DNA of 64,000 nucleotides from Octopus sinensis (lineage: Eukaryota): positions 28,793-92,792 of the forward strand of contig NW_021832868.1 in the NCBI RefSeq assembly GCF_006345805.1. Reading direction: 5' to 3'. Positions 866-34,721 of this stretch are shown here, piece by piece. A program made the position numbers and the translations under genes. Numbering within the stretch: the stretch's first letter is position 1; each line of letters begins with the position of its first letter. The notes under the pieces are model-generated. The model was not told the origin of the DNA. It did no database searches and saw only the letters and a program-made list of their open reading frames with translations.

Positions 866-3800
866 GGAAAAAACATTATTAGTTAAGGGAGTTAAAAACT
901 AACTAAGTAGACCTTCGGCATCGCTGCCTTTTCAGTCTCCATCTCACACACGCCTCCCTACACACAACCACAGGTTAAGACTTACCGCCTTACCTGCCAT
1001 CCAGAAATAATCTTCTCTAGGACCTCAGAGAGGCCTTTGAGAGATGATTCCTGGGCGTCGGAGAGCTCAGTCCGGAATCCTAAGCCATAGGCTAGCCTTA
1101 TGGCTCGTCTTCTTACTTTTTTAAGCACGTCAACATGCTTATCCCTGTCCTCATAGAGGTACCAAGCGTGGACGCCATAGGTCAAGACGGGTAACACCAT
1201 GGCGTTAAACACGCGGAACCAGGCACCTCTGCTCAAGCGGAAAGCACGCAACGCACCTAATCGCTGCATTGCACGCATTTTCGTACGTGCAATGTGATCA
1301 TCAAACTTACCGGACGGCTTAAAGAGCACGCCCAAATAAGTCATCCGATCAACTGCAGCGATTGCTGACCCGCTCAGCAATAACCTAGGAACAAAATTAG
1401 TGTAACCCCTCGTCCTTTTACAGACTTTAAGGACACTGCACTTGTCCGCGCACATTCTCAGACCCCTACTCCCACACCAGTTTGCAAGTCCATCCACAGC
1501 AACCTGAAGCCTACGACACGCACACTCGGTTTCATTGAGTGATCCCAGAGGATAATGTCGTCTGCATAGATTACCATTTCAGTACGAGCATTGACTGGCA
1601 TAGGCGCAGTGGCCATAAACACATTGAATAGTGTCGGACTGAGCACAGAGCCCTGAGGGACCCCGCGAAGGACTGTTGCGACTTTAGAAAAGACCCCCTG
1701 ATGCCGCACGACCTGCCTGCGAGATTCAAGAAACCCCGACAGCCAGCGCCTTAGACACGGAGAAACCCCACACGTGGCAAGGGAACTCCGGAGGCCGTCG
1801 TGCCACACCGAGTCGAAGGCCTTTTCAATGTCGAGACTAACTAAAATACCGCATTCCCTTTTCTGGAGGGCGTTCTTCATACCAGACGACACCTTGTGAA
1901 GGCAGTCCCCGCATGAGCGGCCCTCCCTGAAGCCCCATTGGAACTCAGGGAGGGCGTCTGCAACCATCAGCTCCTCCAGGAGCCTTTGGTGCATAATTCT
2001 TTCTAGGATTTTAGATATTGCGGGGAGCAAGGAAATGGGCCTATATCCCCCGGGGACATCATGTGGCTTCCCGGGCTTTCCGATAAGGATTACCTCAGCC
2101 ACTTTCCACCTGGAGGGAATCATCCCAAGTCGCAAGCTCCCGTTAAATAAAACCTTTAGTGCAGTGATTAACCGCGGCGGGGCCTTCTTAAAGATGGCCA
2201 TCGGGATCCGATCCAAACCCGCCGCGGTGTTCTTACTTCGGGAGATTGCTGCCAGAATCTCCGCTTCAGTAATTTCGCCTGCATCGTTCCTTGATATGCC
2301 CAGCTGGCAGCGCTTGTCCCACGACAATATCTGCTGGACAGTATCAAAGGACGATGTCTCTACGAACTGACCTCCGTCAGTTCCCGAGATGCCATTGAGA
2401 TGGGCTGAAAGTATTTCAACCACCTCAACCGGGTCCGAAGCGAGGTTTCCATCAGAGCGTTTAAGGCGCACTGACTTAGCCCCCCTTCTCCCCGACAGGC
2501 TCTTCAACTGCTTCCAGAAGTCCGGAAAGCGAGGGTCCACCCTTCGGCAGGCCCTCTCCCACCGCGAACTTTCGAGTTCGCGGATTTCTCTTCGGATCTC
2601 CCTCTGAAGCCGGCTAATCCAGCCACGAAACCAAACACGGTTCTCCTCGTAAATGCATTTGTCCCGTAGTCTGGATAGCCGGCGCTTGAACCTAATTTTA
2701 TTTAAGATCCGGTGAGGGAGCGTGGAATGTGACTGACCCTGCACTGAGTTCTGTTTGAAATTATCTCGCATGTAATCAGTCAGGGCAGCATTGATTCCAT
2801 TATCAAGCGCCTCCAACTCACGTATGTTGGCGCAGGTATTCCCCACCAGAAGTGAGGGCAACCTGCTGGCCATGAAACTCTCCAGGTTAGCCCAGGAACC
2901 CACCCGGAGGTCAAAGTATCCTGGGACCCTTTGAGGAACTGGCTCACGGAGTTCGTGCAATAGAGGCAGATGGTCGCTCCCAATATCGGGCAATAAAATA
3001 GTTTTACTAACCCAATTTAGAAGACCGGGACTGACCAGAGCAAGCCCTAGCCAGTCACGTCCTCCCCTCGCGTCGACGTGGTTTGGCTCGCTCGAAGTCC
3101 GGATTTCCAGCCCGAGGTCTTCAACCAGCGTCTTCAGAGCCAAACCATGCGAGTTGGTTACCCTGAAACCAAGATCTTGATGCTTGGCATTCAGGTCCCC
3201 AACAACCATGGCCTTCGGATGCTTTTCAAAGAACTCCCGTACGTGCCAGGAGCACGCCGTAAAGTTCTTCGAGTACATCCCACCTAGGTAAAATGTTAAC
3301 TCGCCTATGCGAATTCTCACTTGGAGGAATTCACACAAGCTACATGAACATATACCTGGACTCTGCAAGGCAAGGTAGGGCTTGTAGAAGAGGCTAGTTC
3401 CTGTGCCACATATTGACCCCTGTTTCCAGGGTATGTGACGACAGTTGTAGCCATCAACTACGTACGGACCCCCCTTTACCTTCGTTTCGTTGACCACCAG
3501 AATGTCCGCACTCGTGGTGGCCAACATCCTCTGAACGGCGTCCCTTTTTCCTTCCAAGGAACGCGCGTTCACCGATATGATGTTGAGCATCATATCGGTT
3601 CTTCGCCAAGGATCTTCTTGGCCTCGGCAACGTTGCAGTGTAGCATTTCCTCTACACTGCAATTCATCTCCCTACAAAATTTTAATAGGGAAACGCATAA
3701 TTGCACCGCAGGACTAATACTGTCCTGCGGTACACGCTCGCCAGGGGCTGAGTGCAATGGCATCTCCACGTATGGAGGACGCCTTTTCAGCCCCAGGTTG

Positions 3801-5324
3801 TGCCGGACGGCGCCGCCGTTAGCCGCCTCAGAAGGCATTGCCGGCTTAGGCAACCAAGCGGACTCGGAAGCTTTCACCTGCTTTGCCAACTTTGTCGGCG
3901 AAGGCTGCACCGACCCACACGTAGCATGGCTCACAGGTTCCACTGTCTTCGCCACCCAAACGGATTTGGAAGGTTTGGCCAGTATCGCCTGCTTGCCAGG
4001 TTTTGGCGCAGGGTGCGCGACGCGACGCGGGCGACTTACTGTTGGGATTACATCCCCACCTACCTTTCGGGTTGCCTCCTTGAACTTGGGGCAACCTCTG
4101 AAGTTGGCAGTGTGTCCCAACTTACCACAGTTGACACACTGCCTCTCCTTGGATGGTGAGGGGCACGTCTTGCGACCATGCTCCCCACCGCAAATAAGGC
4201 ACTTCGCCTTATCCGGGCACTTTGTGGAGATGTGCCCGAACCCCTGACACCGAAAGCATTGGGTGGCTTTCGGGCGGGGCCAGGCAGCTCTCATCCTAAT
4301 GTAGCCGATCCTAGTACCCAGAAGTACTAGGCGCTCGGCTTCCGCAGGAGATCCCAGGATGACCTCCACCACTTCAAGAGGGCGGTTACCCTGCTTGAAG
4401 CGTGCAAGGGCAGAGGCACTGGGGTACTCCCGCTGTATGTGTCCTAAAAGGTCATTATCCTCGAAGTCCCGGGGGACCCCGAGGAGCAGGACTCTTACCT
4501 GCCTTACCTTTTGTTCAATCCTGACAAGCCGATGCATGCCAGGACCGAACGGGCTGGACTTCTCCAGCTCTCCTTTAAAGCTGAAGAAGTCCTCCTCCTT
4601 CTCCCACCCAAGCAGGAATTGGGTGGGCTCCCTCTTCAGGACTCTATACAGCTTTGAAGGCTGGATAGAGTCTAACGTACCTAAGATCTTTATGACCGAG
4701 GCCTTCCCACTTGTAGGGAGGACCTCAAGTCGTGCCACAGCACCGAAGGTAATTCTGCCCCCGGCGCCAGTGGTCTTCTTTGGGTGTGCATCCACCTGAT
4801 CGGACACACACCCAGTACCTAAAACATTAGGGGGGGTTGGACGGCCAGCCGCACGTTTGGGTTTCCCCACCGTGTACCAACCGTCCTCAAGGGCAACCTT
4901 ATTTCCTGCCGTACCCACCGGACGGCCTCAGGAGACGACACCCTGTTGGCATTAATTGACTTACCTAGGCTGGGTTTGGCACCACTAGACAAACCGCAAA
5001 CACGTGGCGAACCAGCATGCTGTGCGGTTGTCGTGGCTACCAAACAATTAGTACCTGTTGCAGCTGCTGCTCCCCCGACACCAGCCAAAGGGGCAGCAGA
5101 GGAGAAGAGTCTTCAGTGAGTGCTGAACCCATCTGGGAGGGTCCAGGCTTCGACCTCCTGCTTTGACCTAAAGAATTAAAAACACCACTAGAATAGCCGG
5201 AAGCACGTGGCGGTGAACCACGGCTCCGGCAGTTCATCGTAGTGGCACACTGAACCGTCTTGTCCTCCGGGGAGTGCGAAGCGGGAACGCCTCCACTTCT
5301 GCATAGTCTTCTTAGTGCAGACAG
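866..5324 (-). mobile_element. Non-LTR retrotransposon family A, copy A1 (full length; APE-RT with CCHC-knuckle ORF1, Jockey/I-like group)
   Basis: ORF1 with three CCHC-type knuckles, ORF2 with APE and RT, and a 3' UTR shared with the copy at 24434-24554. 3' end abuts H2A -10; 5' end is continuous with H3 codons 1-28. Confidence 0.95.
982..3593 (-). CDS. LINE A1 ORF2, APE endonuclease + reverse transcriptase (870 aa after repairing one 1-nt deletion near 1530)
   Basis: APE motifs NARSL, VVNETK, GDLNAKH, GSDHLP; RT motifs YRPISLL, FQWGFR, DIEKAFDSV, GVPQGSVLSP, YADD. 2612 nt versus 2613 for the intact B1 ORF2. Confidence 0.93.
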
Positions 5325-5408
5325 CTTGCGAGCAGATTTTGCAGACAACTGTTTCCTTGGTACTTTTGCACCAGTAGATTTTCGAGCCGTTTGTTTTGTT
5401 CTAGCCAT
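3590..5408 (-). CDS. LINE A1 ORF1 (gag-like nucleic-acid chaperone) initiating at a histone H3 ATG; ~606 aa in consensus
   Basis: CFRCQGFGHISTKC, CLICGGEHGRKTC, CVNCGKLGH knuckles. Two 1-nt C-run deletions (near 5100 and 4920) are intact in copy A2, giving one frame from MARTKQ to EEPI*. Confidence 0.85.
5325..5408 (-). other. H3: Histone H3 5' segment (codons 1-28) fused to LINE A
   Basis: MARTKQTARKSTGAKVPRKQLSAKSARK; H3 homology stops after K27. Confidence 0.95.
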
Positions 5409-5431
5409 ATTTTTTTTTTATTTCAGACAGG

Positions 5432-6051
5432 ACCTATGCCAAACATGCAATATGCTCTCGAAATATTTTGGGAGCGAGTTATTTTAAGTGATGAAAGTAA
5501 ATTTAATATGTAAAATAGTGATGTAAGAACTTTAGTATCGAGAAATCGCAAGGAAAAATATTTAACAAACAATCTTACAAAAACAGTAAAATTCGGTAAA
5601 GGAACTATCATGAACTATCATGCCATAATCAATATTGGATTTATTAATTTGGTTTTGATAAAAGAGAAGATTGGTGGAGCTTTGCATGTTAACATATTAA
5701 CGAATAATATGATCATTTCTGAACAAAATCAAACATAAAGATCCTAGTTTCCAACAAGACAATGATCTGAAACATACTTCGGCAATAGCAAAGAGCTTTT
5801 TTTCAAGTAAATAATATCGAATTACTACTATGGCCAACACAAAGCCCAGATTTAAACCCTATAGATAATGTTTGGGCCTTTATTAAAGAAAAAATCAAAA
5901 GAAGAGATTTTTGAAAAAAGAACATTTATTTGCAAAAATATCATCCATTTGGAATTAACTCAAAATAGAATACGCAAAAAGTCTTATTAATAGCATGCCA
6001 GGCCGAACACTAGATGTAATTAGAGCTAATGGAGGATATAATGGGTATTAA
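5432..6051 (+). pseudogene. Tc1/IS630-type transposase remnant
   Basis: WERVILSDESKFN, TVKFGKG, FQQDNDLKH, WPTQSPDLNPIDNVW, SMPGRTLDVIRANGGYNGY*, with stops and frameshifts; 5' part is replaced by the A1 junction. Confidence 0.88.
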
Positions 6052-6854: not shown

Positions 6855-7022
6855 TATACTCTGCTAACTATTTTTTGTTTACATAATAAAAAAATGGCAT
6901 TCCGAAATTTCGTTGAAGATTTTTTTCGGAATGGTCCTTTTTTGCATCAGTCGAAAAAAATTTGGCAATGATACTTTTTTTGCATAGGTTGAAAATAGTG
7001 TTTATTTAGAGAATTTTTCCTA
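6855..7022. promoter_or_regulatory. Bidirectional H2A-H4 promoter (168 bp)
   Basis: Lies between divergent ATGs. Carries ATTCCG/CGGAAT and (G)CAATGATACTTTTTTTGCAT motifs that recur upstream of other histone genes. Confidence 0.75.
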
Positions 7023-7463
7023 ATGTCTGGACGTGGTAAAGGTGGCAAAGGAGGAAAGAGTGGTGCAAAACGATTTCGAAAGATATTAATTGACAATATA
7101 CAAGGAATTACTAAGCCAGCAATAAGAAGACTATGTCGAAGAGGAGGTGTTCGAAGAATTTCTGGAAAAATTCATGCAATTACAAGACTGTCTCGAGGAG
7201 GACCTCTTCCCAACGAAAAGGTTCCTGATGCGGACGGTTGGCATACCGTGGGGAAACCCAAACGTGTTGCCAGCCGTTTTTAATAGTTTAGGTACTGGGT
7301 GTGTGTCTGCGCAGGTAGATGCACACCCAAAGAAGACTGCTCGCGCCGGGGGTAGAATTACCTTCGGCGTGGTGGCTAGAGAGGTCTAGTGGCCTCGGGC
7401 AAAAAGGCCTCGGTCATAAAGATCCTGGGGACGCTTGACTCTATACAGCCATCTAGGCGGTAT
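7023..7463 (+). mobile_element. Histone H4 codons 1-50 (7023-7172) fused in frame to the 5' end of LINE family B ORF1 (7173-7463)
   Basis: H4 ...[10 protein letters not shown] continues as [21 protein letters not shown], homologous to A ORF1 DGWYTVGKPKR. 7426-7463 matches the B1 sequence at 14428-14464. Confidence 0.9.
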
Positions 7464-8455
7464 GACTCGAATGAAGTTCGTTTTATTGACTCGACAGAAA
7501 AATTCGGAAATTATAGCATTTCTTAAGGATGGTGAAATGCCAGATGAAGTGACTCAGAATCAGAATGAGTCAAATTTCAGGAGAACGGCATCATTATTCA
7601 GATTGTCGGACTCCAAAAATGACATTTTTTACTTCAAAACTTCGGGAATCTTACTACGTACCTTTGCTCTCGAGGAAGTAGAAGAAAAGAAACTTTTTAT
7701 TGAAAATCTCCATTTAAAAAATGGACATCCAGGTCAAGACAAGCTGCTTTTTCTCCTTAAAGATACTGTTTATGGGTCTTGTCGGAATGAGGTTATGTCA
7801 GTCCTCAAATCATGCTGCCAATGTCAGGCGAGAAAGCTTATGAACACCAGACCTGTAATTAAGCCAATAAGAGCCTATAGCGTGAGAGAAAGGTATCACT
7901 ATTCAGTCTAATGTTAGATATATTTTTGATCTAATCGATTTACGTCATTATGCTCATGAGAACGAAAATTACGCGTGGCTTTTGGTTGGCCTCGATTCAT
8001 TCTCAAAGTTTTGTTGGACGTCACCGTCATTGTCCAAATCAGCTATGGAAGTGTCTAAAGCAATAAATAAAATAATATTAATTTTTGGAAAACCATTAAT
8101 TCTTCATATGGACAATGGGAAGGAATTTGTCAACGAAAGGATTTCCCGATTGTGCGATGAGTACAAGATAAAGCACGTGAGAGGTCGTGCAAGGTGCCCT
8201 TGGGTGCAGGGGCAGATGGAAAGACTAAACCAATCTCTGAAATATATGTTGTCCTCCACCTGTTTGTCTGAAAACCTCTATTATAAATGGATTTCGATTA
8301 TAGACCGGATAACCAGTTCATATAACTCACCCATTTGGCAACTCGATGCAATAGAATGCATAATTCCGAGTAAACAAGGCGACATAACGAAATTGTTAAA
8401 TGCATACACATGCACCTATGCAGAAAATTTGGATTCAAAAAATCAAAAAGGTTAA
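7462..8455 (+). mobile_element. Gypsy-like integrase (Ginger/TDD-type transposase) with a 25-nt intron at 7893-7917; C-terminus truncated
   Basis: HHCC zinc finger (HLKNGH..CCQC) and core FDLIDL / LHMDNGKEF / QGQMERLNQSLK. GTATCA..TGTTAG splicing joins the two ORF-track frames (VRER/YIFDLIDL). Confidence 0.85.
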
Positions 8456-9800: not shown

Positions 9801-10390
9801 AGTTGGATGTAGATAAGTCTCTACAGGCTTATATACAGTCAGCCCTTTCCTGACGTTTAGTCAGCAAGAGGCGCTAGACTGCACCTTCTCGAAGGTCTAC
9901 AGTGCCAGAGAAGAAAAGGAAGAAAAAGAGGAGGTGCGTGGAGTGCCACCTTCTGCTCACTTCGAAGGCTCTGGACTTAGTAAAATTACTTAGTTTCTTT
10001 TTTTAATAAAGCTAGTTAGTATATTTATGAAATTGCTAATTTTTATCTGGTTAATTTGTAAGGAATATCAATGTATTTTATTAAAAAAATTATGTATAAT
10101 TTATCCACCAAATCCGTAAATTGTCCTACCTTGACGTTTCAAGGCATTAACAACGTCCATTGCGATAACAGTTTTTCTTTTGGCATGCTCAGTGTAAGAA
10201 ATACAATCACGAACAGTTTGCTCAATAAAAATCTTAAGGACAGAACGTGTCTCCTCGTAAATTTTTCCAGAAATTCTTCGAACACCCCCTCTTCGACATA
10301 GTCTTCTTATTGCTGGCTTAGTAATTCCTTGTATATTGTCAATTAATATCTTTCGAAATCGTTTTGCACCACTCTTTCCTCCTTTGCCCC
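9720..10390. repeat. Inverted segmental duplicate of ~19040-19790 (H4 + 3' flank + RTE remnant)
   Basis: Near-identical reverse complement. Confidence 0.9.
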
Positions 10391-10406
10391 TTACCACGTC
10401 CAGACT
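10101..10406 (-). CDS. H4: Histone H4 (start codon damaged, CCTAATGTCT > CCTAGTCT, plus small indels)
   Basis: [48 protein letters not shown]. Confidence 0.9.
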
Positions 10407-10551
10407 AGGAAAAATTCTCTAAATTGGAAAATTTTTATTTAATAATTAATTAGAGAGGCTGTTAGTGAGGTAACATAAGGAGACCTTCGGCATTCCTGCG
10501 TTTTCGGTCCAGCACACACGCTCGCCTCTCTACACAACCACAGGTTAGGAC

Positions 10552-13164
10552 TTACCGTCTTACCTGCCACCCAGTCATTATCTTCTCTAGGACCTCAGGG
10601 AGGCCTTTGAGGGACAATTTTTGGGCGTTGGAGAGCTCATCACGCCATCCTAAGCCATAGGCTAGCCGGATAGCTCGTCTTCTTACTTTCTTAAGCGCGT
10701 CAACGTGCTTCTCCCTGTCCTCGCAGAAGTGCCAAGCGTGCACGCCATAGGTTAACACGGGTAACACCATGGCGTTGAACACACGGAACCAGGCACCTCT
10801 CCTCAAGTGGAAAGCACGCAACGCGCCTAATCGCTGCATTGCACGCATTTTAGTGCGTGCAATGTGATCATCGAACTTACCTGACTGCTTGAAGACCACG
10901 CCCAAGTAGGTCGTCCGATCAACTATAGCGATCGCTGACCCGTCCAGCGATAACCTAGGGATAAAATTAGTGTAACCCCTCGTCCTTTTACAGACTTTAA
11001 GGACACTGCACTTGTCCGCACACATCTTTAGACCCCTACTCCCACACCAGTGTACAAGTTCATCCACAGCAACCTGTAGCCTACGACACGCACACTCTGG
11101 TTTCATCGACTGATTCCAGAGGATAATGTCGTCTGCATAGATCACCATTTCAGTACGAGCATTGACTGGCATAGGCGCAGAGGCCATAAAGATATTAAAC
11201 AGTGTGGGACTCAGCACAGAACACTGAGGGACCCCGCGAAGGACTGTTCCGACTTTAGAAAAGACCCCCTGGTGTCGCACGACCTGACCGCGAGATTCGA
11301 GGAACCCCGACAGCCAGCGCCTTAGACACGGAGAAACCCCACACGTGGCGAGGGAACTCCGCAGGCCGTCGTGCCACACCGAGTCGAAGGCCTTTTCTAT
11401 GTCAAGACTAACTAACATACCAAACTCACTTTTCTGGAGGGCGTTCTTCATTTCGGAAGACACCTTCCACAAGCAGTCTCCACATGAACGACCCTCCCTG
11501 AAGCCCCATTGGAACTCCGGGAGGGCGTCAACCACCGTCAGCTCCTCCAGGAGCCTTCGGTGCATGATCCTTTCTAGGATTTTAGATATAGCGGGAAGCA
11601 AGGAAATGGGCCTATATCCCCCGGGGACATCATGCTGCTTCCCAGGTTTTCCAATGAGGATTACCTCAGCCACTTTCCACCTGGAAGGAATCATCCCAAG
11701 TCGCAAGCTCCCGCTAAACAAAACCTGTAAGGCCGTGATCAACAACGGCGGGGCCTTTTTGAAGATGGACATAGGGATCCGATCTAGCCCCGCCGCGGTG
11801 TTCTTACTTCGGGAGATCGCTGCCAGGATCTCCCTTTCGGAAACTTCGCCTGCATCGACCCTTGATATGTCCAGCTGGCAGCGCTTGTCCCAAGACAATA
11901 CCTCCTGGATAGTAACAAAAGACGACGTCTCTACGAACTGACTTCCGTCAGTTCCCGAGATGTTGTTGAGGTGGGTTGAAAATATATCAGCCACCTCAAC
12001 CGGGTCCGAGGCGAGGGTTCCATCAGAGCGCTTAAGGCGCACTGACTTTGCCTCCCCTCTCCCCGACAGGCTCTTCAGTTGTTTCCAGAAGTCCGGAAAG
12101 CGCGGGTCCACTCTTTGGCAGGCCCGCTCCCACCGTGAACTTTCGTGTTCACGGATTTCCCTCCGGATCTCCCTCTGAAGCCGGCTGATCCAGCCGCGAA
12201 ACCAGACACGGTTCTCCTGGTAGACGCATTTGTCCCGCAGTCTGGACAGCCGGCGCTTGAATCTAATTTTATTTAGCACCCGGTACGGGAGCGTGGAATG
12301 TGCCTGGCCCTGTACTGGGTTCTGTTTGAAATTATCTCGCATATAATCAGACAGGGCAGCATTGATTCCATTATCTAACGCCTCCAACTCTCGTATGTTG
12401 GCGCAGGTATTCCCCACCAGGAGTGAGGGCAACCTGCTGGCCATGAACCTCTCCAGGTTGGCCCAGGAACCGGACCGGAGGTCAAAGTATCCTGGGGCCC
12501 TTTGAGGAACTGGCTCACGGAGTTCGTGCAATAGAGGCAGATGGTCGCTCCCAATATCAGGCAATAAAATTGTGTTACTAACCCAATTTAGCATCCCGGG
12601 GCTGACCAGAGCAAGGCCTAGCCAGTCTTGTCCTCCCCGCGAATCGATGTGGTTTGGCTCGCTTGAAGATCTGATTTCCAACCCGAGGTCTTCAACCAGC
12701 GTCTTTAGAGCCAAACCATGCGCGTTGGTTACCCTGAAACTGAGCTCTTGGTGCTTGGCATTCAGGTCCCCAACGACCATCGCCTTCGGATGCTTTCCAA
12801 AGAACTCCCGTACGTGCCAAGAACACGCCGTAAAGTTCTTCGAATACATCGCCCCTAGGTAAAAGTTTAAATTACCTATGCGAATCCTCACTTGGAGGAA
12901 TTCACATAGGCTACAAGAACATATACCTGAGCTCCGGAGAGCAAGGTACGGCTTGTAGAAGAGGCTAGTTCCAGTGCCACATGTTGACCCCTGTTTCCAG
13001 GGTATGTGACAGCAGTTGTAGCCATCAACTACGTACCGATCCTGCTTTAACTTTGTTTCGTTGACCACCAGGATGTCCGCACTAGTGGTGGCCAACATCC
13101 TCCGAATCGCGTCTCCTTTGCCTGACAAGGAGCGCGCGTTCACCGATATGATGTTGAGCATCAT
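10552..13164 (-). CDS. LINE B1 ORF2, uninterrupted APE-RT (870 aa)
   Basis: Single ORF with all APE and RT motifs (YADD). No RNase H or C-terminal CCHC seen. Confidence 0.95.
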   Translation of the reverse strand: MMLNIISVNARSLSGKGDAIRRMLATTSADILVVNETKLKQDRYVVDGYNCCHIPWKQGSTCGTGTSLFYKPYLALRSSGICSCSLCEFLQVRIRIGNLNFYLGAMYSKNFTACSWHVREFFGKHPKAMVVGDLNAKHQELSFRVTNAHGLALKTLVEDLGLEIRSSSEPNHIDSRGGQDWLGLALVSPGMLNWVSNTILLPDIGSDHLPLLHELREPVPQRAPGYFDLRSGSWANLERFMASRLPSLLVGNTCANIRELEALDNGINAALSDYMRDNFKQNPVQGQAHSTLPYRVLNKIRFKRRLSRLRDKCVYQENRVWFRGWISRLQREIRREIREHESSRWERACQRVDPRFPDFWKQLKSLSGRGEAKSVRLKRSDGTLASDPVEVADIFSTHLNNISGTDGSQFVETSSFVTIQEVLSWDKRCQLDISRVDAGEVSEREILAAISRSKNTAAGLDRIPMSIFKKAPPLLITALQVLFSGSLRLGMIPSRWKVAEVILIGKPGKQHDVPGGYRPISLLPAISKILERIMHRRLLEELTVVDALPEFQWGFREGRSCGDCLWKVSSEMKNALQKSEFGMLVSLDIEKAFDSVWHDGLRSSLATCGVSPCLRRWLSGFLESRGQVVRHQGVFSKVGTVLRGVPQCSVLSPTLFNIFMASAPMPVNARTEMVIYADDIILWNQSMKPECACRRLQVAVDELVHWCGSRGLKMCADKCSVLKVCKRTRGYTNFIPRLSLDGSAIAIVDRTTYLGVVFKQSGKFDDHIARTKMRAMQRLGALRAFHLRRGAWFRVFNAMVLPVLTYGVHAWHFCEDREKHVDALKKVRRRAIRLAYGLGWRDELSNAQKLSLKGLPEVLEKIMTGWQVRR

Positions 13165-14464
13165 ATCGGCTCCTCACCAAGAAACTTCTTGGCCTCGGCA
13201 TAGTTGCGGCGTAGCATATCCGCTACGCTGCACTTCATCTCCCTACAAAGTGTTATCAGGCGTATACATAACTCCACCGCAGGACTAACACTGTCCTGCG
13301 GCTCACGCTCGCAAGGGGGTGAGTGCAATGGCATCTCCACGTATGGAGGAAGCCTTTTCGCCCCCAGGTTTTGCTGGGTGGTGTCACCTGTAGCCGATTC
13401 GGAGGGCATCGCAGGCTTCGGCATCCGAGCTGACTCGGATGCTTCCACCCGCTTTGCCGGCTTTGTCGGCGACGGCGGAACCGACCCGCTAGCAATGTGG
13501 CTAGCAGGCTTCGCCACCCAAGCGGACTTGGGAGGTTTGGCCTGCTTTGCCTGTTTGCCAGGTTGTGGAGCGGGGGCCGCGACGCTGGGGGTGCGGTGGC
13601 TTGCAGGCATCACAGGCTTCGCCACGCAAGCGGACTTGGGAGGTTTGGCCTGCTTTGCTTGTTTGCCAGGTTTTGGCGCTGGGGCCGCGACGCTAGGGGT
13701 GCGGTGGCTTGCAGGCTTCACAGGCCTCGCCACCCAAGCGGACTTGGGAGGTTTGGCCTGCTTTACCTGTTTGCCGGTTGGTTGCGCGGGGGCCGCGACG
13801 CTAGGGGGGCGACTTACCTTCGGGATTACATCCCCACCAACCTGTCGGGTTGCCTCCTTGAACTTACGACAACCCTTGAAGTTGGCAGTGTGTCCTAACT
13901 TACCACAGTTGACACACTGCCTCACCATAGGTGGTGAGGGGCATGTCTTGCGATCATGCTTCCCACCGCAGATTAGGCATTTCGCCTTCTCCGGACACTT
14001 CGTGCTTATGTGTCCGAACCCCTGACACCGAAAGCATTGGGTGGCTTTCGGGCGGGGCCGGACAGCACGAAGCCTGACGTAGCCGATCCTAGTACCCAGA
14101 AGTACTAGGCGCTCGGCTTCCGCAGGAGATCCCAGGATGACCTCCACCACTTCAAGAGGGCGGTTACCCTGCTTGAAGCGTGCAAGGGCAGAGGCACTGG
14201 GGTACTCCCGCTGTATGTGTCCTAAAAGGTCATTATCCTCGAAGTCCCGGGGGACCCCGAGGAGCAGGACTCTTACCTGCCTTACCTTTCGTTCAATCCT
14301 GACAAGCCGATGCATGCCAGGACCGAACGGGCTGGACTTCTCCAGCTCTCCTTTAAAGCTGAAGAAGTCCTCCTCCTTCTCCCACCCAAGCAGGAATTGG
14401 GTGGGCTCCCTCTTCAGGACTCTATACCGCCTAGATGGCTGTATAGAGTCAAGCGTCCCCAGGA
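13161..14464 (-). CDS. LINE B1 ORF1, 5'-truncated; CCHC knuckles and Ala/Lys/Pro-rich repeats
   Basis: CFRCQGFGH, CLICGGKH, CVNCGKLGH; ends EEPI* overlapping the ORF2 ATG. Confidence 0.9.
13507..13810. repeat. Three tandem 108-bp (36-aa) units in B ORF1
   Basis: Unit starts at 13507, 13615 and 13723; also present in B2 (~18070-18370). Confidence 0.9.
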
Positions 14465-14469: not shown

Positions 14470-14820
14470 AAAACAGTTTAGAAAAAAAATATAACAAAAA
14501 TAATTAAAATTTGGTAGAAATTGATCATTTTAGATTTTAGGGCGCTAAAATACAAGATCGCCGAATCCGGGAACAAATAAATAAAAGTTTGCCATAAGAA
14601 TATAAAGAATAGAACTTTCTATCAAAAAATAAGGTAAAATTCAATGAATAAAGATAAATGAGAATATTTCAAATAAGCGATATAAACAAATTGAAAGAAT
14701 AAACTCGCAAATATTACACAAATGAAATTTCAGATAATTTATTAATTAAAAGAAACTACATCGCAAAATATTCCTTCTAATCCAAATAAATAAAAAAATA
14801 AAGATTGACCAAATAATGGC
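14470..14820 (-). repeat. Dispersed AT-rich repeat of unknown origin (also ~28897-29330 and ~38694-39225)
   Basis: Shared blocks such as ATTATTTGGTCAATCTTTATTTTTT and GGATTAGAAGGAATATTTTGCGATGTAG. Confidence 0.8.
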
Positions 14821-14907
14821 AAATTGTGAAACAGAATTGCGAGCAGATTGTTTCCTTGGAAATTTTGCTCCAGTAGATTTTTGAGCAGTTTGTTGTGTTC
14901 TAGCCAT
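14820..14907 (-). pseudogene. H3: H3-like 5' stub (MARTQQTAQKSTGAKFPRKQSAR)
   Basis: Degenerate H3 N-tail with the same upstream region as the stub at 28844. Confidence 0.8.
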
Positions 14908-14988
14908 ATTTTTGTTATTTCAGACAGAACCGATTCAGACAAGTTATTTTTGATTTATATTATTCCGAATTTTTAAACAACGTTATTA

Positions 14989-17900
14989 GGAGGAGGAAAA
15001 TTTTTATTTAATAATTAATTAGAGAGGCTGTTAGTGAGGTAACATAAGGAGACCTTCGGCATTCCTGCCTTTTCGGTCCAGCACACACGCTCGCCTCTCT
15101 ACACAACCACAGGTTAGGACTTACCGTCTTACCTGCCACCCAGTCATTATCTTCTCTAGGACCTCAGGGAGGCCTTTGAGGGACAATTCCTGGGCGTTGG
15201 AGAGCTCATCACGCCATCCTAAGCCATAGGCTAGCCGGATAGCTTGTCTTCTTACTTTCTTAAGCGCGTCAACGTGCTTCTCCCTGTCCTCGCAGAAGTG
15301 CCAAGCGTGCACGCCATAGGTTAACACGGGTAACACCATGGCGTTGAACACACGGAACCAGGCACCTCTCCTCAAGTGGAAAGCACGCAACGCGCCTAAT
15401 CGCTGCATTGCACGCATTTTAGTGCGTGCAATGTGATCATCGTACTTACCTGACTGCTTGAAGACCACGCCCAAGTAGGTCGTCCGATCAACTATAGCGA
15501 TCGCTGACCCGTCCAGCGATAACCTAGGGATAAAATTAGTGTAACCCCTCGTCCTTTTACAGACTTTAAGGACACTGCACTTGTCCGCACACATCTTTAG
15601 ACCCCTACTCCCACACCAGTGTACAAGTTCATCCACAGCAACCTGTAGCCTACGACACGCACACTCTGGTTTCATCGACTGATTCCAGAGGATAATGTCG
15701 TCTGCATAGATCACCATTTCAGTACGAGCATTGACTGGCATAGGCGCAGAGGCCATATAGATATTAAACAGTGTGGGACTCAGCACAGAACACTGAGGGA
15801 CCCCGCGAAGGACTGTTCCGACTTTAGAAAAGACCCCCTGGTGTCGCACGACCTGACCGCGAGATTCGAGGAACCCCGACAGCCAGCGCCTTAGACACGG
15901 AGAAACCCCACACGTGGCGAGGGAACTCCGCAGGCCGTCGTGCCACACCGAGTCGAAGGCCTTTTCTATGTCAAGACTAACTAACATACCAAACTCACTT
16001 TTCTGGAGGGCGTTCTTCATTTCGGAAGACACCTTCCACAAGCAGTCTCCACATGAACGACCCTCCCTGAAGCCCCATTGGAACTCCGGGAGGGCGTCAA
16101 CCACCGTCAGCTCCTCCAGGAGCCTTCGGTGCATGATCCTTTCTAGGATTTTAGATATAGCGGGAAGCAAGGAAATGGGCCTATATCCCCCGGGGACATC
16201 ATGCTGCTTCCCAGGTTTTCCAATGAGGATTACCTCAGCCACTTTCCACCTGGAAGGAATCATCCCAAGTCGCAAGCTCCCGCTAAACAAAACCTGTAAG
16301 GCCGTGATCAACAACGGCGGGGCCTTTTTGAAGATGGACATAGGGATCCGATCTAGCCCCGCCGCGGTGTTCTTACTTCGGGAGATCGCTGCCAGGATCT
16401 CCCTTTCGGAAACTTCGCCTGCATCGACCCTTGATATGTCCAGCTGGCAGCGCTTGTCCCAAGACAATACCTCCTGGATAGTAACAAAAGACGACGTCTC
16501 TACGAACTGACTTCCGTCAGTTCCCGAGATGTTGTTGAGGTGGGTTGAAAATATATCAGCCACCTCAACCGGGTCCGAGGCGAGGGTTCCATCAGAGCGC
16601 TTAAGGCGCACTGACTTTGCCTCCCCTCTCCCCGACAGGCTCTTCAGTTGTTTCCAGAAGTCCGGAAAGCGCGGGTCCACTCTTTGGCAGGCCCGCTCCC
16701 ACCGTGAACTTTCGTGTTCACGGATTTCCCTCCGGATCTCCCTCTGAAGCCGGCTGATCCAGCCGCGAAACCAGACACGGTTCTCCTGGTAGACGCATTT
16801 GTCCCGCAGTCTGGACAGCCGCGCTTGAATCTAATTTTATTTAGCACCCGGTACGGGAGCGTGGAATGTGCCTGGCCCTGTACTGGGTTCTGTTTGAAAT
16901 TATCTCGCATATAATCAGACAGGGCAGCATTGATTCCATTATCTAACGCCTCCAACTCTCGTATGTTGGCGCAGGTATTCCCCACCAGGAGTGAGGGCAA
17001 CCTGCTGGCCATGAACCTCTCCAGGTTGGCCCAGGAACCGGACCGGAGGTCAAAGTATCCTGGGGCCCTTTGAGGAACTGGCTCACGGAGTTCGTGCAAT
17101 AGAGGCAGATGGTCGCTCCCAATATCAGGCAATAAAATTGTGTTACTAACCCAATTTAGCATCCGGGGCTGACCAGAGCAAGGCCTAGCCAGCCTTGTCC
17201 TCCCCGCGAATCGATGTGGTTTGGCTCGCTTGAAGATCTGATTTCCAACCCGAGGTCTTCAACCAGCGTCTTTAGAGCCAACCATGCGCGTTGGTTACCC
17301 TGAAACCGAGCTCTTGGTGCTTGGCATTCAGGTCCCCAACGACCATCGCCTTCGGATGCTTTCCAAAGAACTCCCGTACGTGCCAAGAACACGCCGTAAA
17401 GTTCTTCGAATACATCGCCCCTAGGTAAAAAGTTAAATTACCTATGCGAATCCTCACTTGGAGGAATTCACATAGGCTACAAGAACATATACCTGAGCTC
17501 CGGAGAGCAAGGTACGGCTTGTAGAAGAGGCTAGTTCCAGTGCCACATGTTGACCCCTGTTTCCAGGGTATGTGACAGCAGTTGTAGCCATCAACTACGT
17601 ACCGATCCTGCTTTAACTTTGTTTCGTTGACCACCAGGATGTCCGCACTAGTGGTGGCCAACATCCTCCGAATCGCGTCTCCTTTGCCTGACAAGGAGCG
17701 CGCGTTCACCGATATGATGTTGAGCATCATATCGGCTCCTCACCAAGGAACTTCTTGGCCTCGGCATAGTTGCGGCGTAGCATATCTGCTACGCTGCACT
17801 TCATCTCCTCACAAAGTGTTATCAGGCGTATACATAACTCCACCGCAGGACTAACACTGTCCTGCGGCTCACGCTCGCAAGGGGGTGAATGCAGTGGCAT

Positions 17901-18928
17901 CTCCACGTATGGAGGAAGCCTTTTCGCCCCCAGGTTTTGCTGGGCGGTGTCACCTGTAGCCGACTCGGAAGGCATCGCAGGCTTCGGCATCCGAGCTGAC
18001 TCGGATGCTTTCACCCGCTTTGCCGGCTTTGTCGGCGACGGCGGTACCGACCCGCTAGCAATGTGGCTCGCAGGCTTCGCCACCCAAGCGGACTTGGGAG
18101 GTTTGGCCTGCTTTGCCTGTTTGCTAGGTTGTGGAGCGGGGGCCGCGATGCTGGGGGTGCGGTGGCTTGCAGGCATCACAGGCTTCGCCACGCAAGCGGA
18201 CTTGGGAGGTTTGGCCTGCTTTGCTTGTTTGCCAGGTTTTTGCGCTTGGGCCGCGACGCTAGGGGTGCGGTGGCTTGCAGGCTTCACAGGCCTCGCCACC
18301 CAAGCGGACTTGGGAGGTTTGGCCTGATTTACCTGTTTGCCGGTTGGTTGCGCGGGGGCCGCGACGCTAGGGGGGCGACTTACCTTCGGGATTACATCCC
18401 CACCAACCTGTCGGGTTGCCTCCTTGAACTTACGACAACCCTTGAAGTTGGCAGTGTGTCCTAACTTACCACAGTTGACACACTGCCTCACCATAGGTTG
18501 TGAGGGGCATGTCTTGCGACCATGCTACCCACCGCAGATTAGGCATTTCGCCTTCTCCGGACACTTCGTGCTTATGTGTCCGAACCCCTGACACCGAAAG
18601 CATTGGGTGGCTTTCGGGCGGGGCCGGACAGCACGTCAAGAGGGCGGTTACCCTGCTTAAAGCGTGCTAGGGCAGAGGCACTGGGGTACTCCCGCTGTAT
18701 GTGTCCTAAAAGGTCATTATCCTCGAAGTCCCGGGGGACCCCGAGGAGCAGGACTCTTACCTGCCTTACCTTTCGTTCAATCCTGACAAGCCGATGCATG
18801 CCAGGACCGAACGGGCTTGACTTCTCCAGCTCTCCTTTAAAGTTAAAGAAGTCCTCCTCCTTCTCCCACCCAAGCAGGAATTGGGTGGGCTCCCTCTTCA
18901 GGACTCTATACCGCCTAGATGGCTGTAT
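14989..18928 (-). mobile_element. LINE family B, copy B2 (5'-truncated, frameshifted, ~80-bp ORF1 deletion near 18633)
   Basis: Near-identical to B1. Ends in a (TCC)3 tail 80 nt upstream of the H3-like ATG; 5' break joins the H4 promoter. Confidence 0.95.
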
Positions 18929-19018
18929 GGTCCTTTTTTGCATCAGTCGAAAAAAATTTGGCAATGATACTTTTTTTGCATAGGTTGAAAATAGTGTTTA
19001 TTTAGAGAATTTTTCCTA

Positions 19019-19326
19019 ATGTCTGGACGTGGTAAAGGTGGCAAAGGAGGAAAGAGTGGTGCAAAACGATTTCGAAAGATATTAATTGACAATATACAGG
19101 AATTACTAAGCCAGCAATAAGAAGACTATGTCGAAGAGGGGGTGTTCGAAAAATTTCTGGAAAAATTTACGAGGAGACACGTTCTGTCCTTAAGATTTTT
19201 ATTGAGCAAACTGTTCGTGATTGTATTTCTTACACTGAGCATGCCAAAAGAAAAACTGTTATCGCAATGGACGTTGTTAATGCCTTGAAACGTCAAGGTA
19301 GGACAATTTACGGATTTGGTGGATAA
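19019..19326 (+). CDS. H4: Histone H4 (102 aa after repairing a 1-nt deletion near 19098), with half of its promoter at 18929-19018
   Basis: Complete [24 protein letters not shown] sequence; AATAAA just downstream. Confidence 0.92.
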
Positions 19327-20014
19327 ATTATACATAATTTTTTTAATAAAATACATTGATATTCCTTACAAATTAACCAGATAAAAATTAGCAATTTCAT
19401 AAATATACTAACTAGCTTTATTAAAAAAAGAAACTAAGTAATTTTACTAAGTCCAGAGCCTTCGAAGTGAGCAGAAGGTGGCACTCCACGCACCTCCTCT
19501 TTTTCTTCCTTTTCTTCTCTGGCACTGTAGACCTTCGAGAAGGTGCAGTCTAGCGCCTCTTGCTGACTAAACGTCAGGAAAGGGCTGACTGTATATAAGC
19601 CTGTAGAGACTTATCTACATCCAACTGTCTTAAGTACCGCTTGTGGTATTTGGTGACCAGTTCATCCCATGTCATCACACACAGTTCTTGAAAGGGATCT
19701 CAAACTTCATGGCAAAAGTTTCAAAAACTGGGACGACCTAAAATCTTTGCGGGATTTCGCCCGCAACAGAGGGGCATGGACGAGCAAGGAACAGAAGATT
19801 GTTTTGCTTGTGACACGTGTCGGATTATAACTTTGTTAATGTTCCTACGGAATGTATTATAATAATAATTTCCTCATGACATTAACTAATTTATAACTTT
19901 CCGTTTACTTATTGTTTTATTTATTAAGAAATATTTTAATTATCTACTATTACAAATTATCCTCTCAAAAAATTCGGAATGCTACTTTTAAAAAAATTTT
20001 GGAAATAAAAAAAA

Positions 20015-23000
20015 ATGGCTAGAACAAAACAAACGGCTCGAAATCTACTGGTGCAAAAGTACCAAGGAAACAGTTGTCTGCAAAATCTGCTCGCAAGCTG
20101 TCTGCACTAAGAAGACTATGCAGAAGTGGAGGCGTTCCCGCTTCGCACTCCCCGGAGGACAAGACGGTTCAGTGTGCCACTACGATGAACTGCCGGAGCC
20201 GTGGTTCACCGCCACGTGCTTCCGGCTATTATGTGGTGTTTAATTCTTTAGGTCAAAGCAGGAGGTCGAAGCCTGGACCCTCCCAGATGGGTTCAGCACT
20301 CACTGAAGACTCTTCTCCCTCTGCTCCCCCTTTGGCTGGTGTCGGGGGAGCAGCAGCTGCAACAGGTACTAATTGTTTGGTAGCACGACAACCGCACAGC
20401 ATGCTGGTTCGCCACGTGTTTGCGGTTTGTCTAGTGGTGCCAAACCCAGCCTAGGTAAGTCAATTAATGCCAACAGGGTGTCGTCTCCTGAGGCCGTCCC
20501 GGTGGGTACGGCAGGAAATAAGGTTGCCCTTGAGGACGGTTGGTACACGGTGGGGAAACCCAAACGTGCGGCTGGCCGTCCAACCCCCCCTAATGTTTTA
20601 GGTACTGGGTGTGTGTCCGATCAGGTGGATGCACACCCAAAGAAGACCACTGGCGCCGGGGGCAGAATTACCTTCGGTGCTGTGGCACGACTTGAGGTCC
20701 TCCCTACAAGTGGGAAGGCCTCGGTCATAAAGATCTTAGGTACGTTAGACTCTATCCAGCCTTCAAAGCTGTATAGAGTCCTGAAGAGGGAGCCCACCCA
20801 ATTCCTGCTTGGGTGGGAGAAGGAGGAGGACTTCTTCAGCTTTAAAGGAGAGCTGGAGAACAGCCCGTTCGGTCCTGGCATGCATCGGCTTGTCAGGATT
20901 GAACAAAGGTAAGGCAGGTAAGAGTCCTGCTCCTCGGGGTCCCCCGGGACTTCGAGGATAATGACCTTTTAGGACACATACAGCGGGAGTACCCCAGTGC
21001 CTCTGCCCTTGCACGCTTCAAGCAGGGTAACCGCCCTCTTGAAGTGGTGGAGGTCATCCTGGGATCTCCTGCGGAAGCCGAGCGCCTAGTACTTCTGGTA
21101 CTAGGATCGGCTACATTAGGATGAGAGCTGCCTGGCCCCGCCCGAAAGCCACCCAATGCTTTCGGTGTCAGGGGTTCGGGCACATCTCCACAAAGTGCCC
21201 GGATAAGGCGAAGTGCCTTATTTGCGGTGGGGAGCATGGTCGCAAGACGTGCCCCTCACCATCCAAGGAGAGGCAGTGTGTCAACTGTGGTAAGTTGGGA
21301 CACACTGCCAACTTCAGAGGTTGCCCCAAGTTCAAGGAGGCAACCCGAAAGGTAGGTGGGGATGTAATCCCAACAGTAAGTCGCCCGCGTCGCGTCGCGC
21401 GCCCTGCGCCAAAACCTGGCAAGCAGGCGATACTGGCCAAACCTTCCAAATCCGTTGGGTGGCGAAGACAGTGGAACCGTGAGCCATGCTACGTGTGGGT
21501 CGGTGCAGCCTTCGCCGACAAAGTTGGCAAAGCAGGTGAAAGCTTCCGAGTCCGCTTGGTTGCCTAAGCCGGCAATGCCTTCTGAGGCGGCTAACGGCGG
21601 CGCCGTCCGGCACACCTGGGGCTGAAAAGGCGTCCTCCATACGTGGAGATGCCATTGCACTCAGCCCCTGGCGAGCGTGTACCGCAGGACAGTATTAGTC
21701 CTGCGGTGCAATTATGCGTTTCCCTATTAAAATTTTGTAGGGAGATGAATTGCAGTGTAGAGGAAATGCTACACTGCAACGTTGCCGAGGCCAAGAAGAT
21801 CCTTGGCGAAGAACCGATATGATGCTCAACATCATATCGGTGAACGCGCGTTCCTTGGAAGGAAAAAGGGACGCCGTTCAGAGGATGTTGGCCACCACGA
21901 GTGCGGACATTCTGGTGGTCAACGAAACGAAGGTAAAGGGGGGTCCGTACGTAGTTGATGGCTACAACTGTCGTCACATACCCTGGAAACAGGGGTCAAT
22001 ATGTGGCACAGGAACTAGCCTCTTCTACAAGCCCTACCTTGCCTTGCAGAGTCCAGGTATATGTTCATGTAGCTTGTGTGAATTCCTCCAAGTGAGAATT
22101 CGCATAGGCGAGTTAACATTTTACCTAGGTGGGATGTACTCGAAGAACTTTACGGCGTGCTCCTGGCACGTACGGGAGTTCTTTGAAAAGCATCCGAAGG
22201 CCATGGTTGTTGGGGACCTGAATGCCAAGCATCAAGATCTTGGTTTCAGGGTAACCAACTCGCATGGTTTGGCTCTGAAGCGCTGGTTGAAGACCTCGGG
22301 CTGGAAATCCGGACTTCGAGCGAGCCAAACCACGTCGACGAGGGGGAGGGGACGTGACTGGCTAGGGCTTGCTCTGGTCAGTCCCGGTCTTCTAAATTGG
22401 GTTAGTAAAACTATTTTATTGTCCGATATTGGGAGCGACCATCTGCCTCTATTGCACGAACTCCGTGAGCCAGTTCCTCAAAGGGTCCCAGGATACTTTG
22501 ACCTCCGGGTGGGTTCCTGGGCTAACCTGGAGAGTTTCATGGCCAGCAGGTTGCCCTCACTTCTGGTGGGGAATACCTGCGCCAACATACGTGAGTTGGA
22601 GGCGCTTGATAATGGAATCAATGCTGCCCTGACTGATTACATGCGAGATAATTTCAAACAAACTCAGTGCAGGGTCAGGCACATTCCACGCTCCCTCACC
22701 GGATCTTAAATAAAATTAGGTTCAAGCGCCGGCTATCCAGACTACGGGACAAATGCGTTTACGAGGAGAACCGTGTTTGGTTTCGTGGCTGGATTAGCCG
22801 GCTTCAGAGGGAGATCCGAAGAGAAATCCGCGAACTCGAAAGTTCGCGGTGGGAGAGGGCCTGCCGAAGGGTGGACCCTCGCTTTCCGGACTTCTGGAAG
22901 CAGTTGAAGAGCCTGTCGGGGAGAAGGGGGGCTAAGTCAGTGCGCCTTAAACGCTCTGATGGAACCCTCGCTTCGGACCCGGTTGAGGTGGTTGAAATAC

Positions 23001-27500: not shown

Positions 27501-27924
27501 CAAATACCTTCCTATTTGTATACCATGCAACAATCTTGCCCAGCCTACTGTATGGTATGGAAGCTTGGTTCTACTCGAAACAATATGAGAAAATTCTGCG
27601 AAAATGCGAAAAAATACGGAGATACGCTCTAAAACTAGCCTATATGCTAAATCCATGGGAGCCTGTCCCAAGCTGGGCGGAGAGCAAGTCTCCAGAGCTA
27701 CGGCAGGCCATCGAGGCTTCTATCCGAACTTTTCGGAAACGCTCTAAAGTAACTGACCTATTCATCGATCGTGGAGAATAGCAGGTGTCCCTGCTCATAG
27801 ACAGACAAAGCGGACGAACCATGGAAGAGCTCGAATGCCCAAAGCAATCGTCTCGTCAAAATTACTTTCCGCACTAATTTTCTGTCTCGCTCTTCTTTCT
27901 TACAATAAAATTCTTCGTTCGTTC
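24555..27924 (+). mobile_element. LINE family C, copy C1 (5'-truncated in ORF1; ORF2 APE-RT ~25186-27781 with frameshifts)
   Basis: CLVCGGEH and CINCNSPGH knuckles; NARSIK, GDLNSKH, GSDHLP, YRPISL, GVPQGSCLSP, YADD. Ends AATAAAATTCTTC(GTTC)2 just upstream of H2B. Confidence 0.93.
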
Positions 27925-28710: not shown

Positions 28711-28800
28711 AACCAAAAAATTTTCGGAATGATACTTTTTTGCATTACTCCAAAAAATTTCGGAATAACGTTGTTTAAAAATTCGGAATAATATAAAACA
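28711..28800 (+). promoter_or_regulatory. Histone-type promoter with three AAATT(T)CGGAAT motifs
   Basis: CGGAAT at 28725, 28761 and 28784, upstream of the H3-like ATG at 28844. Confidence 0.65.
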
Positions 28801-28843
28801 AAAATAACTTGTCTGAATCGGTTCTGTCTGAAATAACAAAAAT

Positions 28844-28891
28844 ATGGCTAGAACACAACAAACTGCTCGAAAATCTACTGGAGCAAAATTT
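28844..28891 (+). pseudogene. H3: H3-like 5' stub (MARTQQTARKSTGAKF)
   Basis: 16 H3-like codons, then joined to the AT-rich repeat. Confidence 0.8.
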
Positions 28892-34612: not shown

Positions 34613-34701
34613 GTAATTCCTTGTATATTGTCAATTAATATCTTTCGAAATCGTTTTGCACCACTCTTTCCTCCTTTGCCACCTTTACCACGTCCAGACA
34701 T
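34613..34701 (-). pseudogene. H4: Histone H4 5' fragment (codons 1-30) between LINE B3 and the RLE element
   Basis: [30 protein letters not shown]; identical to the other H4 5' ends. Confidence 0.92.
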
Positions 34702-34721
34702 TAGGAAAAATTCTCTAAATT

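Follow-up and report, generated by a model that had tools for sequence, protein, structure and literature searches.

Can a retrotransposon that has no start codon of its own for its first protein begin this protein within the coding sequence of a host histone gene? This question is raised by a junction in the genome of Octopus sinensis, at which the 5' part of a histone H4-like gene, with its start codon at position 7023, passes into a LINE fragment that ends at position 7463. Unless another locus is named, all positions refer to the stretch of 64,000 nucleotides that was analyzed as a whole (the window). A preliminary description of this stretch had proposed that ORF1 of an element family termed B is fused in frame to H4 codons 1-50, and that this represents an independent second case next to a family A, in which the histone is H3.

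The host locus is an array of variant histone genes

The intact H4 protein of the window, encoded outside the junction copy, is identical to "histone H4-like [Octopus sinensis]", and the window represents an array of variant histone genes of this species. Exact-protein look-ups led to eight loci in the assembly GCA_006345805.1, one of which (L007) is the window itself, taken from the same assembly. The locus L001 represents the native array with a unit of ~5.1 kb carrying H3-like, H2A-like, and H4-like genes; an H2B gene was not found in this unit. The histones encoded in the array are unusually divergent, the H4-like protein being only ~79% identical to canonical H4 (499-855, 7023, 10101-10397, and 19019-19330 in the window; L001), while the H2A-like and H3-like proteins are rich in Cys. 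Rfam returned no histone 3' stem-loop, and the H4 stop codon is followed by AATAAA. Small deletions are present, as assembled, in two of the H4 copies in the window, with the start codon lost in the 10397 region and 1 nt deleted in the 19019 region; these copies may be either pseudogenes or assembly errors. A comparable gene set was encountered in the assembly of the ant Vollenhovia emeryi (L009; GCA_000949405.1, DF945167.1, 2255 bp), comprising H2A-like, H2B-like, and H4-like genes with 70-78% nucleotide identity to the octopus variant set (92% for the H4 protein) and no LINE nearby. This is probably either foreign DNA in the ant assembly or an indication of a variant histone set that is widely shared.

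The array hosts several further rearrangements and mobile elements. A mariner/Tc1-like transposase remnant (window 5434-6002) is a fixed component of the array unit, and a Tc5/pogo-type DDE transposase ORF is located further along the window (44989-46101). In L006 (3015-3155, minus strand), the H2A 3' flank stands directly before H4 codons 54-100, representing the join of a ~690-bp deletion; its H4 breakpoint (+159/160) coincides with the join of the LINE family F described below. An AT-rich noncoding repeat, termed D, is joined to H3 5' pieces at two positions (~+48 and ~+100), with D entered at differing points. In L003, H3 codons 15-136 stand behind a D segment, an arrangement that annotators treated as an intron-containing H3. 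We rejected the interpretation of this repeat as an H3 intron, since the native H3 gene in L001 is intronless.

The junction joins a native H4 5' end to a truncated element

The sequence upstream of the H4 piece (6856-7003) shows 98.8% identity to the sequence preceding the intact H4, at 18927-19019, and is collinear with the array in L001, placing the H4 piece of the junction in its native upstream context. The piece itself is 96-100% identical to other H4 copies, with the window genes at ~19019 and 10397 and the gene in L001 serving as intact references, and the homology ends sharply at 7172, i.e., at codon 50. Congruently, H4 chains deposited in the PDB match residues 1-55 of the gene starting at 7023 with an E-value of about 1e-20. 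From 7173 onward the sequence is GC-rich and shows 75% identity over 246 nt to the 5' region of family A; as a leader (7173-7463), it is 75-78% identical to the leaders of families A and F. The last 41 nt of the fragment are 100% identical to the 5' end of another family-B copy of the window (B1), and the last 21 nt overlap the 5' end of a further one (B2; Table 1).

Reading of the frame bore out several details that had been noticed at this junction. The H4 frame does cross the join after GKI into the conserved block, no Met occurs in it between the join and this block, and the matching motif in family A (DGWYTVGKPKR) is in the frame of ORF1; furthermore, the linker is much shorter in B than in A (~45 nt vs ~440 nt). 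The proposed fusion of B ORF1 to H4 codons 1-50 stood with respect to junction and phase, but the frame is closed and ORF1 is absent at this locus. Four stops are found in the H4 frame within 7023-7463, so that the H4-started ORF does not span the entire interval as had been described. Compared with the intact leader of family F, the B fragment shows two frame-shifting length differences and a third one that is in frame. The element ends at 7463 and an unrelated integrase-like ORF begins ~9 nt later, while at its distal end the fragment has returned to the phase of B1 ORF1. As assembled, this copy is a broken, truncated fragment and not an expressible H4-ORF1 fusion. Neither the fusion ORF of 86 aa, nor ORF2 of B1, nor a GTG-started H4 ORF was on record in an exact-protein look-up.

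Two considerations determine how such a junction is to be read. First, a single in-phase junction is a 1-in-3 event by chance and can gain significance only from a pattern seen across the whole family. Second, the assembly carries indel noise, recognized by 18 indel events (10 of them in homopolymers) vs 16 mismatches between the copies A1 and A2; with 1-nt indels being this frequent, open or closed frames of single copies are unreliable. The interval itself is a decayed example, and its value lies in the LINE family to which it led.

The element is a LINE with an AP-type endonuclease

ORF2 of B1 contains the domains PF03372/PF14529 (Exo_endo_phos, AP-like endonuclease) and PF00078 (RVT_1), with the LINE-1 ORF2p and R2 proteins as best PDB matches, and ORF1 carries CCHC knuckles (PF00098, Pfam). 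Self-comparison of the window revealed no LTRs. The copies B1, B2, and A3 are 5'-truncated at different points, and the 3' tails read ...AAATTTTCC or T(n)C(n)(GG). Based on these sequence features, we classify the element as a non-LTR (LINE) retrotransposon with an AP-type endonuclease. The closest database relatives of ORF2 are unnamed proteins with at most 29% identity and are too distant to name the LINE clade; the ORF2 endonuclease gave no match to solved R1/TRAS endonucleases. A ribozyme at the join was considered and rejected, since Rfam returned nothing relevant in either 5' region at E<=10 and no match at gathering score in the whole window.

Table 1. Features of the octopus histone array discussed in the text (window positions unless a locus is given).
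Feature	Position	Strand	Description
Family-A copy A1	868-5430	-	H3 -22 to +84 (codons 1-28, start codon 5408), H4 relic, ~400 nt, ORF1 extension
H2A-H4 divergent intergenic/promoter region, native	6856-7003		carries the TTCGGAAT motif common to the local histone promoters
H4-like gene, 5' part	7004-7172	+	5'UTR from -19 and codons 1-50, start codon 7023
Family-B LINE 5' fragment, 291 nt	7173-7463	+	~35-nt older H4 relic, then ORF1 N-terminal extension; 3' side cut off
41-nt stretch, duplicated inverted	7423-7463 and 14424-14464 (5' end of B1)	opposite strands	100% identity
Integrase-like coding region of an unrelated element	7473-8455	+	H2C2 zinc domain (PF17921) and rve core (PF00665); abuts the cut end of the B fragment
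H4 copy behind the B1 tail	10101-10424	-	starts at -20; native 3' flank; two small deletions as assembled, one removing the start codon
Family-B copy B1	10426-14464	-	ORF1 13161-14315 open from the internal Met; ORF2 10552-13164 open, 870 aa; tail end 10426
H3 5' pieces with repeat D	14820-14995, 28764-28892, 38684-39198; L003 12689-12851		
Family-B copy B2	14995-18928	-	5'-truncated 20 nt further in than B1; both ORFs interrupted several times
Family-A copy A2	20002-24547	+	99.1% identical to A1; H3 piece from -14; other flanks on both sides
H4 5' piece (-19 to +88) with an unrelated 5'-truncated reverse-transcriptase element	34613-34720	-	join out of phase; contrast case, not selected
Copy A3/X	34722-38541	-	A-like body with a 3' end of the B type; 5' truncation within the leader; tail next to H4 at -20

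The copies differ in their state of preservation and in their surroundings. In B1, the frame upstream of the internal Met of ORF1 is open to the 5' end of the copy and agrees in phase with the H4 start codon to which the fragment is joined. The tail of B2 abuts H3 at about -80, and its 5' end is located in an H4 promoter in inverse orientation. A1 changes frame, as assembled, between the H3 start codon and ORF1, and its tail directly adjoins H2A at -10. A3 shows an open frame from the truncation point in the leader to the ORF1 stop (496 aa). This copy is a recombinant, with a body 94-95% identical to A and the last ~430 nt 98-99% identical to B, and a hybrid of the same type was also found in L002, there beside H4 at -138 rather than -20.

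Two unrelated elements accompany these copies. The L001 counterpart of the integrase-like region (12309 to 11451) has a different flank and is situated inside a unit bounded by 75-nt inverted repeats. This unit (L001 8859-12600) comprises 3.7 kb with H2C2 and rve domains and no reverse transcriptase, and resembles a DNA transposon equipped with an integrase of the retroviral type; its counterpart in the window is interrupted ~9 nt ahead of the ATG. A second LINE family, C, coding for endonuclease and reverse transcriptase, is represented at window positions 25050-27924 and 40753-43631 and in L001 (1-414), where its 3' end abuts H3 at -22, the base at which the leader of family A begins.

The leader of ORF1 is coding sequence without a start of its own

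All copies share an internal Met of ORF1 (MHRLVRIE...), and the frame is open far upstream of this residue. The conserved N-terminal extension thus delimited comprises ~145 codons and contains no start codon of its own. Comparisons of leaders, among them the B fragment against A and F, gave mismatches at codon positions 1/2/3 of 15/9/24, 4/5/12, 3/7/13, 4/8/17, 7/6/18, and 1/5/9, the third position being the most frequently altered each time, with these comparisons sharing lineages and not being independent of each other. A full HMMER scan with ORF1 returned 9019 ORF1-like hits at E<=1e-3; a word-indexed homology search with the same protein returned no matches. Several distant ORF1 proteins align over 50-150 residues upstream of the internal Met, which is itself not conserved in them, and a W-x-x-V...(K/R)R motif is shared by two distant ORF1 homologues. 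In combination, the third-position bias and the upstream homology indicate that the region following the histone piece is the ancestral N-terminal part of ORF1.

A segment of 126 nt that directly precedes the internal Met (4412-4537, 14316-14441, and equivalents) is 97% identical between A and B, compared with 87-90% for the ORF bodies, a level of conservation that points to extra constraint or gene conversion in this segment. The internal Met and ~150 nt upstream of it are kept in the truncated copies B1 and B2; ORF1 might therefore also be made without a histone start.

Histone 5' ends are joined to the leader in phase in every family

The most complete example was found in L003, where an uninterrupted ORF of 513 aa (1672-3213) leads from the H4 start codon through H4 codons 1-53 and the leader to the ORF1 stop, with no internal Met before residue 199 and with ORF2 following with one break. 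This copy represents a family, F, carrying H4 from -20 to +159, for which three contigs show an identical join at H4 +159 and two different upstream flanks. Family A carries H3 from -22 to +84, corresponding to 28 codons that are identical to native H3 and read in phase with ORF1, and in an A-type copy in L004 the frame of the H3 start codon stays free of stops over most of the leader. In family B, the H4 piece extends to +150, a join that was seen in one copy only; a recurrence of this join, by which the fusion could have gained support in B itself, was not found in ~190 kb of related loci. A frame running uninterrupted from the host AUG to the stop is thus present in L003 and absent, as assembled, in the B fragment and in every single A copy.

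The element parts of A and B both begin with a diverged relic of H4, which starts at the same H4 nucleotide in both and is read in the H4 frame. In shuffle tests of the relic against H4, 1/2000 and 0/2000 shuffles reached the observed score, with 1/2000 for the relic of the B fragment. This shared relic argues for a common ancestor of A and B that was already equipped with a histone leader. As a consequence, the proposed independence of the two cases applies to their outer joins, to H3 in A and to H4 in B, which are separate events; it does not extend to the older leader that they have in common.

In total, 4/4 separate histone joins are in phase, for which the chance expectation is about 1/81, while an unrelated reverse-transcriptase element joined to H4 +88 is out of phase. 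At the level of sequence comparison, these data strongly support a repeated capture of the first histone codons, together with their start signal, as the in-frame start of ORF1 in this LINE family. The idea of a histone start, which had been raised for the decayed B junction, is hereby upheld for the family on the basis of the intact ORF in L003, the coding-like character of the leader, and its homology to distant ORF1 N-termini.

The histone piece travels with the element in families A and F

The H3 piece is attached to A1 and A2 as well as to the copies in L004 and L006 beside different flanks, and the H4 piece is attached to F in L003/L008 and in L005, again beside different flanks; both represent the pattern by which 5' transduction is recognized. 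For B, the segment was found at one locus only. The H3 piece of A1 is inverted with respect to native H3 and adjoins non-H3 sequence (window 5434 onward matches L001 6848 onward), a foreign context showing that it moved along with the element. The upstream flank of F is either a mariner-like remnant, joined at an 11-12-nt microhomology, or the tail of another element. In full-length leaders, the first base is placed no more than a few nt from H4 -20 or H3 -22 and adjoins unrelated flanking sequence, from which we infer that the start of the leader corresponds to the RNA's 5' end, i.e., to the start of histone transcription.

At the other end of the element, tails abut histone genes of the same orientation at H4 -20 (several loci, two tail types), H3 -21/-22, and H2A -10. 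Further tail sites are H3 -63 and -80, H4 -138, an H2B-like start, and non-histone sites; since histone genes served as the entry to every locus sampled, this survey is biased with regard to site-specificity. Candidate explanations for the coincidence between the base behind the tails and the base at which leaders start are a preference of the endonuclease, head-to-tail template switching with later recombination, and read-through RNA with terminal redundancy.

Proposed mechanism and alternative explanations

Considering all copies together, the explanation that we regard as likely is that a histone 5' segment supplies the element with a 5'UTR, an AUG, and the first 28-53 codons of ORF1, in phase with its remainder. 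Source copies would be positioned behind a histone promoter, the RNA of the element would begin at the histone transcription start, and ribosomes would initiate at the histone AUG, giving rise to an ORF1 protein with a histone-tail N-terminus. A new leader would be created when a fresh insertion becomes joined by its 5' end, in sense orientation, to a point within the initial ~160 nt of a histone gene. The N-terminal domain of ORF1 would remain translatable only after a join in phase, and only copies with such a join, by presumed selection, would become source copies. From then on, the histone piece would travel with the element, as seen for A and F.

For the B junction itself, a quite plausible alternative, if somewhat short of probable, is that B was inserted in situ with its 3' end at H4 -20 and its 5' end at +150, thereby duplicating ~170 nt and leaving an intact H4 behind, in which case the H4 piece would be target DNA that is not yet mobile. 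In line with this, the H4 piece retains its native upstream context, and the tail of B1 is followed by H4 from -20 with its native 3' flank. The fragment and B1 overlap inversely by 41 nt, which forms the basis for regarding them as one element split by an inversion: B1, situated ~7 kb away on the opposite strand, is probably the remaining part of the B copy, and undoing the inversion restores the order of L001, with H4, its flank, and the reversed integrase. This arrangement suggests that a single full-length B stood between duplicated H4 stretches of ~170 nt and was subsequently broken up by a ~7-kb inversion. The F copy in L003 is likewise trailed by an H4 gene from -20. The comparison with L001 left the second inversion breakpoint unconfirmed, with no similarity between window 14465 onward and the sequence predicted from L001. 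Furthermore, the two H4 pieces that would flank B are just 96.4% identical, their difference of 3.5% exceeding that between B1 and B2, and the 5' sides of A1 and of F in L003 correspond to a site 1-3.7 kb away and not to the matching histone gene. A simple long target duplication was accordingly rejected as a general rule: it fails for A1, with a 5' flank at L001 position 6848 and ~3.7 kb of the array missing, and for F in L003, with a 5' join at an 11-12-nt microhomology ~970 bp upstream. An insertion in situ would at the same time fit the preferred reading of a captured histone start, within which it would mark the initial stage of a new leader.

Template switching, in which the enzyme would jump from the 5' end of the element RNA to a histone mRNA and copy it to the cap, with the native context of the B junction restored by later recombination, appears unlikely to us. 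It would account for histone pieces with a constant first nucleotide (~-20 or -22) and a variable internal end point, and for the head-to-tail pairs in L004 and L005, where a few additional nt separate a tail from the initial base of a leader. Short microhomologies at the joins and the existence of a recombinant A/B copy point in the same direction. The B piece, however, is contiguous with the native promoter and H2A, and the H4 genes behind the tails retain >400 nt of native flank past the poly(A) signal, on which grounds they were rejected as processed cDNA copies. The recurring "GG" before leaders, considered as possible cap-derived bases, fits equally well as the end of a T(n)C(n)GG tail and does not support this mechanism.

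Similarly improbable is a dead-on-arrival insertion or join of B in an H4 copy that is in phase by chance and never served as a translational start. One junction in three would be in phase anyway, the frame at this locus is closed, and ORF1 is absent. The 5' region of H4 is also joined, out of phase, to the unrelated 5'-truncated reverse-transcriptase element, and H3 5' pieces are joined to the AT-rich repeat at two positions; these joins to unrelated sequences indicate that histone 5' ends gather junctions generally. What argues against coincidence is the layout that B shares with the family (a histone piece, a relic in the H4 frame, and an ORF1 extension without AUG), the return of the distal end of the fragment into the phase of ORF1, and the occurrence of all four family joins in phase, with a fully open frame in one copy.

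An assembly artefact, with the H4/B join or the closed frame resulting from a mis-join or an indel error in a repetitive long-read assembly, is very unlikely: the indel noise seen between A1 and A2, the small deletions in H4 copies, the odd inverted 41-nt overlap, and the restriction of the B join to one assembly stand against an analogous F join on three contigs, an A join on several, and a clean switch from 98-100% H4 identity to a leader with a relic shared by A, and indel errors could account for the closed frame but not for the join.

Going beyond the preferred reading of a histone-supplied start, we tentatively consider an extension that is rather doubtful at present. Lacking a terminator, read-through RNA of the element would bear the same histone 5' segment at both ends, and this redundancy would guide a homology-primed, gene-preserving insertion. 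Such terminal redundancy would explain why tails meet a histone 5'UTR at its first base, why head-to-tail pairs occur, and why the histone gene behind the element is intact. The H3(1-28) or H4(1-50/53) peptide would in addition be functional, with the particle using the import and deposition route of new histones. The tails of histones H3 and H4 carry nuclear import signals, and helix 1 of H4 is a chaperone-binding site; the old H4 relic kept in A and B corresponds exactly to this helix.

Implications and comparison with known systems

LINEs depending on a host promoter are known for RNA genes, namely rDNA, spliced-leader, and snRNA genes. Full-text search of the literature (with Repbase outside its scope) revealed no histone-associated LINE and none with a first protein starting in host histone codons. 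Histone gene expression is generally tied to S phase. If confirmed, the octopus family would represent a retrotransposon that has lost its own ORF1 start and promoter and survives by repeated capture of the 5' end of a highly expressed gene family. It would further provide a natural example of selection on reading phase at joins between transposons and genes, and might connect retrotransposon particles with the pathway of histone supply. For annotation, it follows as a warning that an N-terminus labelled "H4-like" or "H3-like" in a cephalopod genome can be that of a transposon protein.

Among known elements, LINEs of the R1/R2 type in rDNA share with the octopus family a tandem multicopy host gene array, an apparent dependence on the host promoter, junctions recurring at fixed nucleotides (octopus tails at H4 -20, H3 -22, and H2A -10), and common 5' truncation. 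In contrast, the octopus hosts are Pol II protein-coding histone genes that also supply the AUG and N-terminal codons in frame, and the insertion sites are not strictly confined to one nucleotide (-63, -80, -138, and non-histone sites being used as well). Compared with R2 in particular, the octopus endonuclease is of the AP type, and an HDV-like ribozyme was not detected in the octopus element.

SLACS, CZAR, and CRE1 of trypanosomatids reside a few nt inside the small, highly transcribed multicopy spliced-leader gene; they encode a restriction-like endonuclease, and their host piece is noncoding with a length of 11 nt. As proposed for the octopus family, their element RNA starts with the first nucleotides of the host gene and uses the host promoter, yet they are not known to involve a translational fusion or a repeated turnover of leaders. 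In the bdelloid rotifer element R9, an exceptionally long target duplication of 126 bp is known. Provided that the B fragment and B1 belong to a single element, the latter would be flanked in a similar way by ~170 nt of duplicated target, with the difference that this putative duplication would also create a translational leader and regenerate an intact host gene.

Chimeric retrocopies of the U6-L1 type arise by template switching and are, as far as known, dead ends. They resemble the octopus joins in that the complete 5' end of a cellular RNA is fused to a LINE at a variable point, with microhomology or extra bases, whereas the octopus chimeras are propagating lineages with at least one join in a native gene context. 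Mammalian L1 is known for 5' transduction, and its successive lineages have gained unrelated 5'UTRs. Both systems carry upstream host sequence from an outside promoter to new loci; in the octopus family, however, this piece is coding, derives each time from histone genes, is in phase with ORF1, and replaces the start of ORF1.
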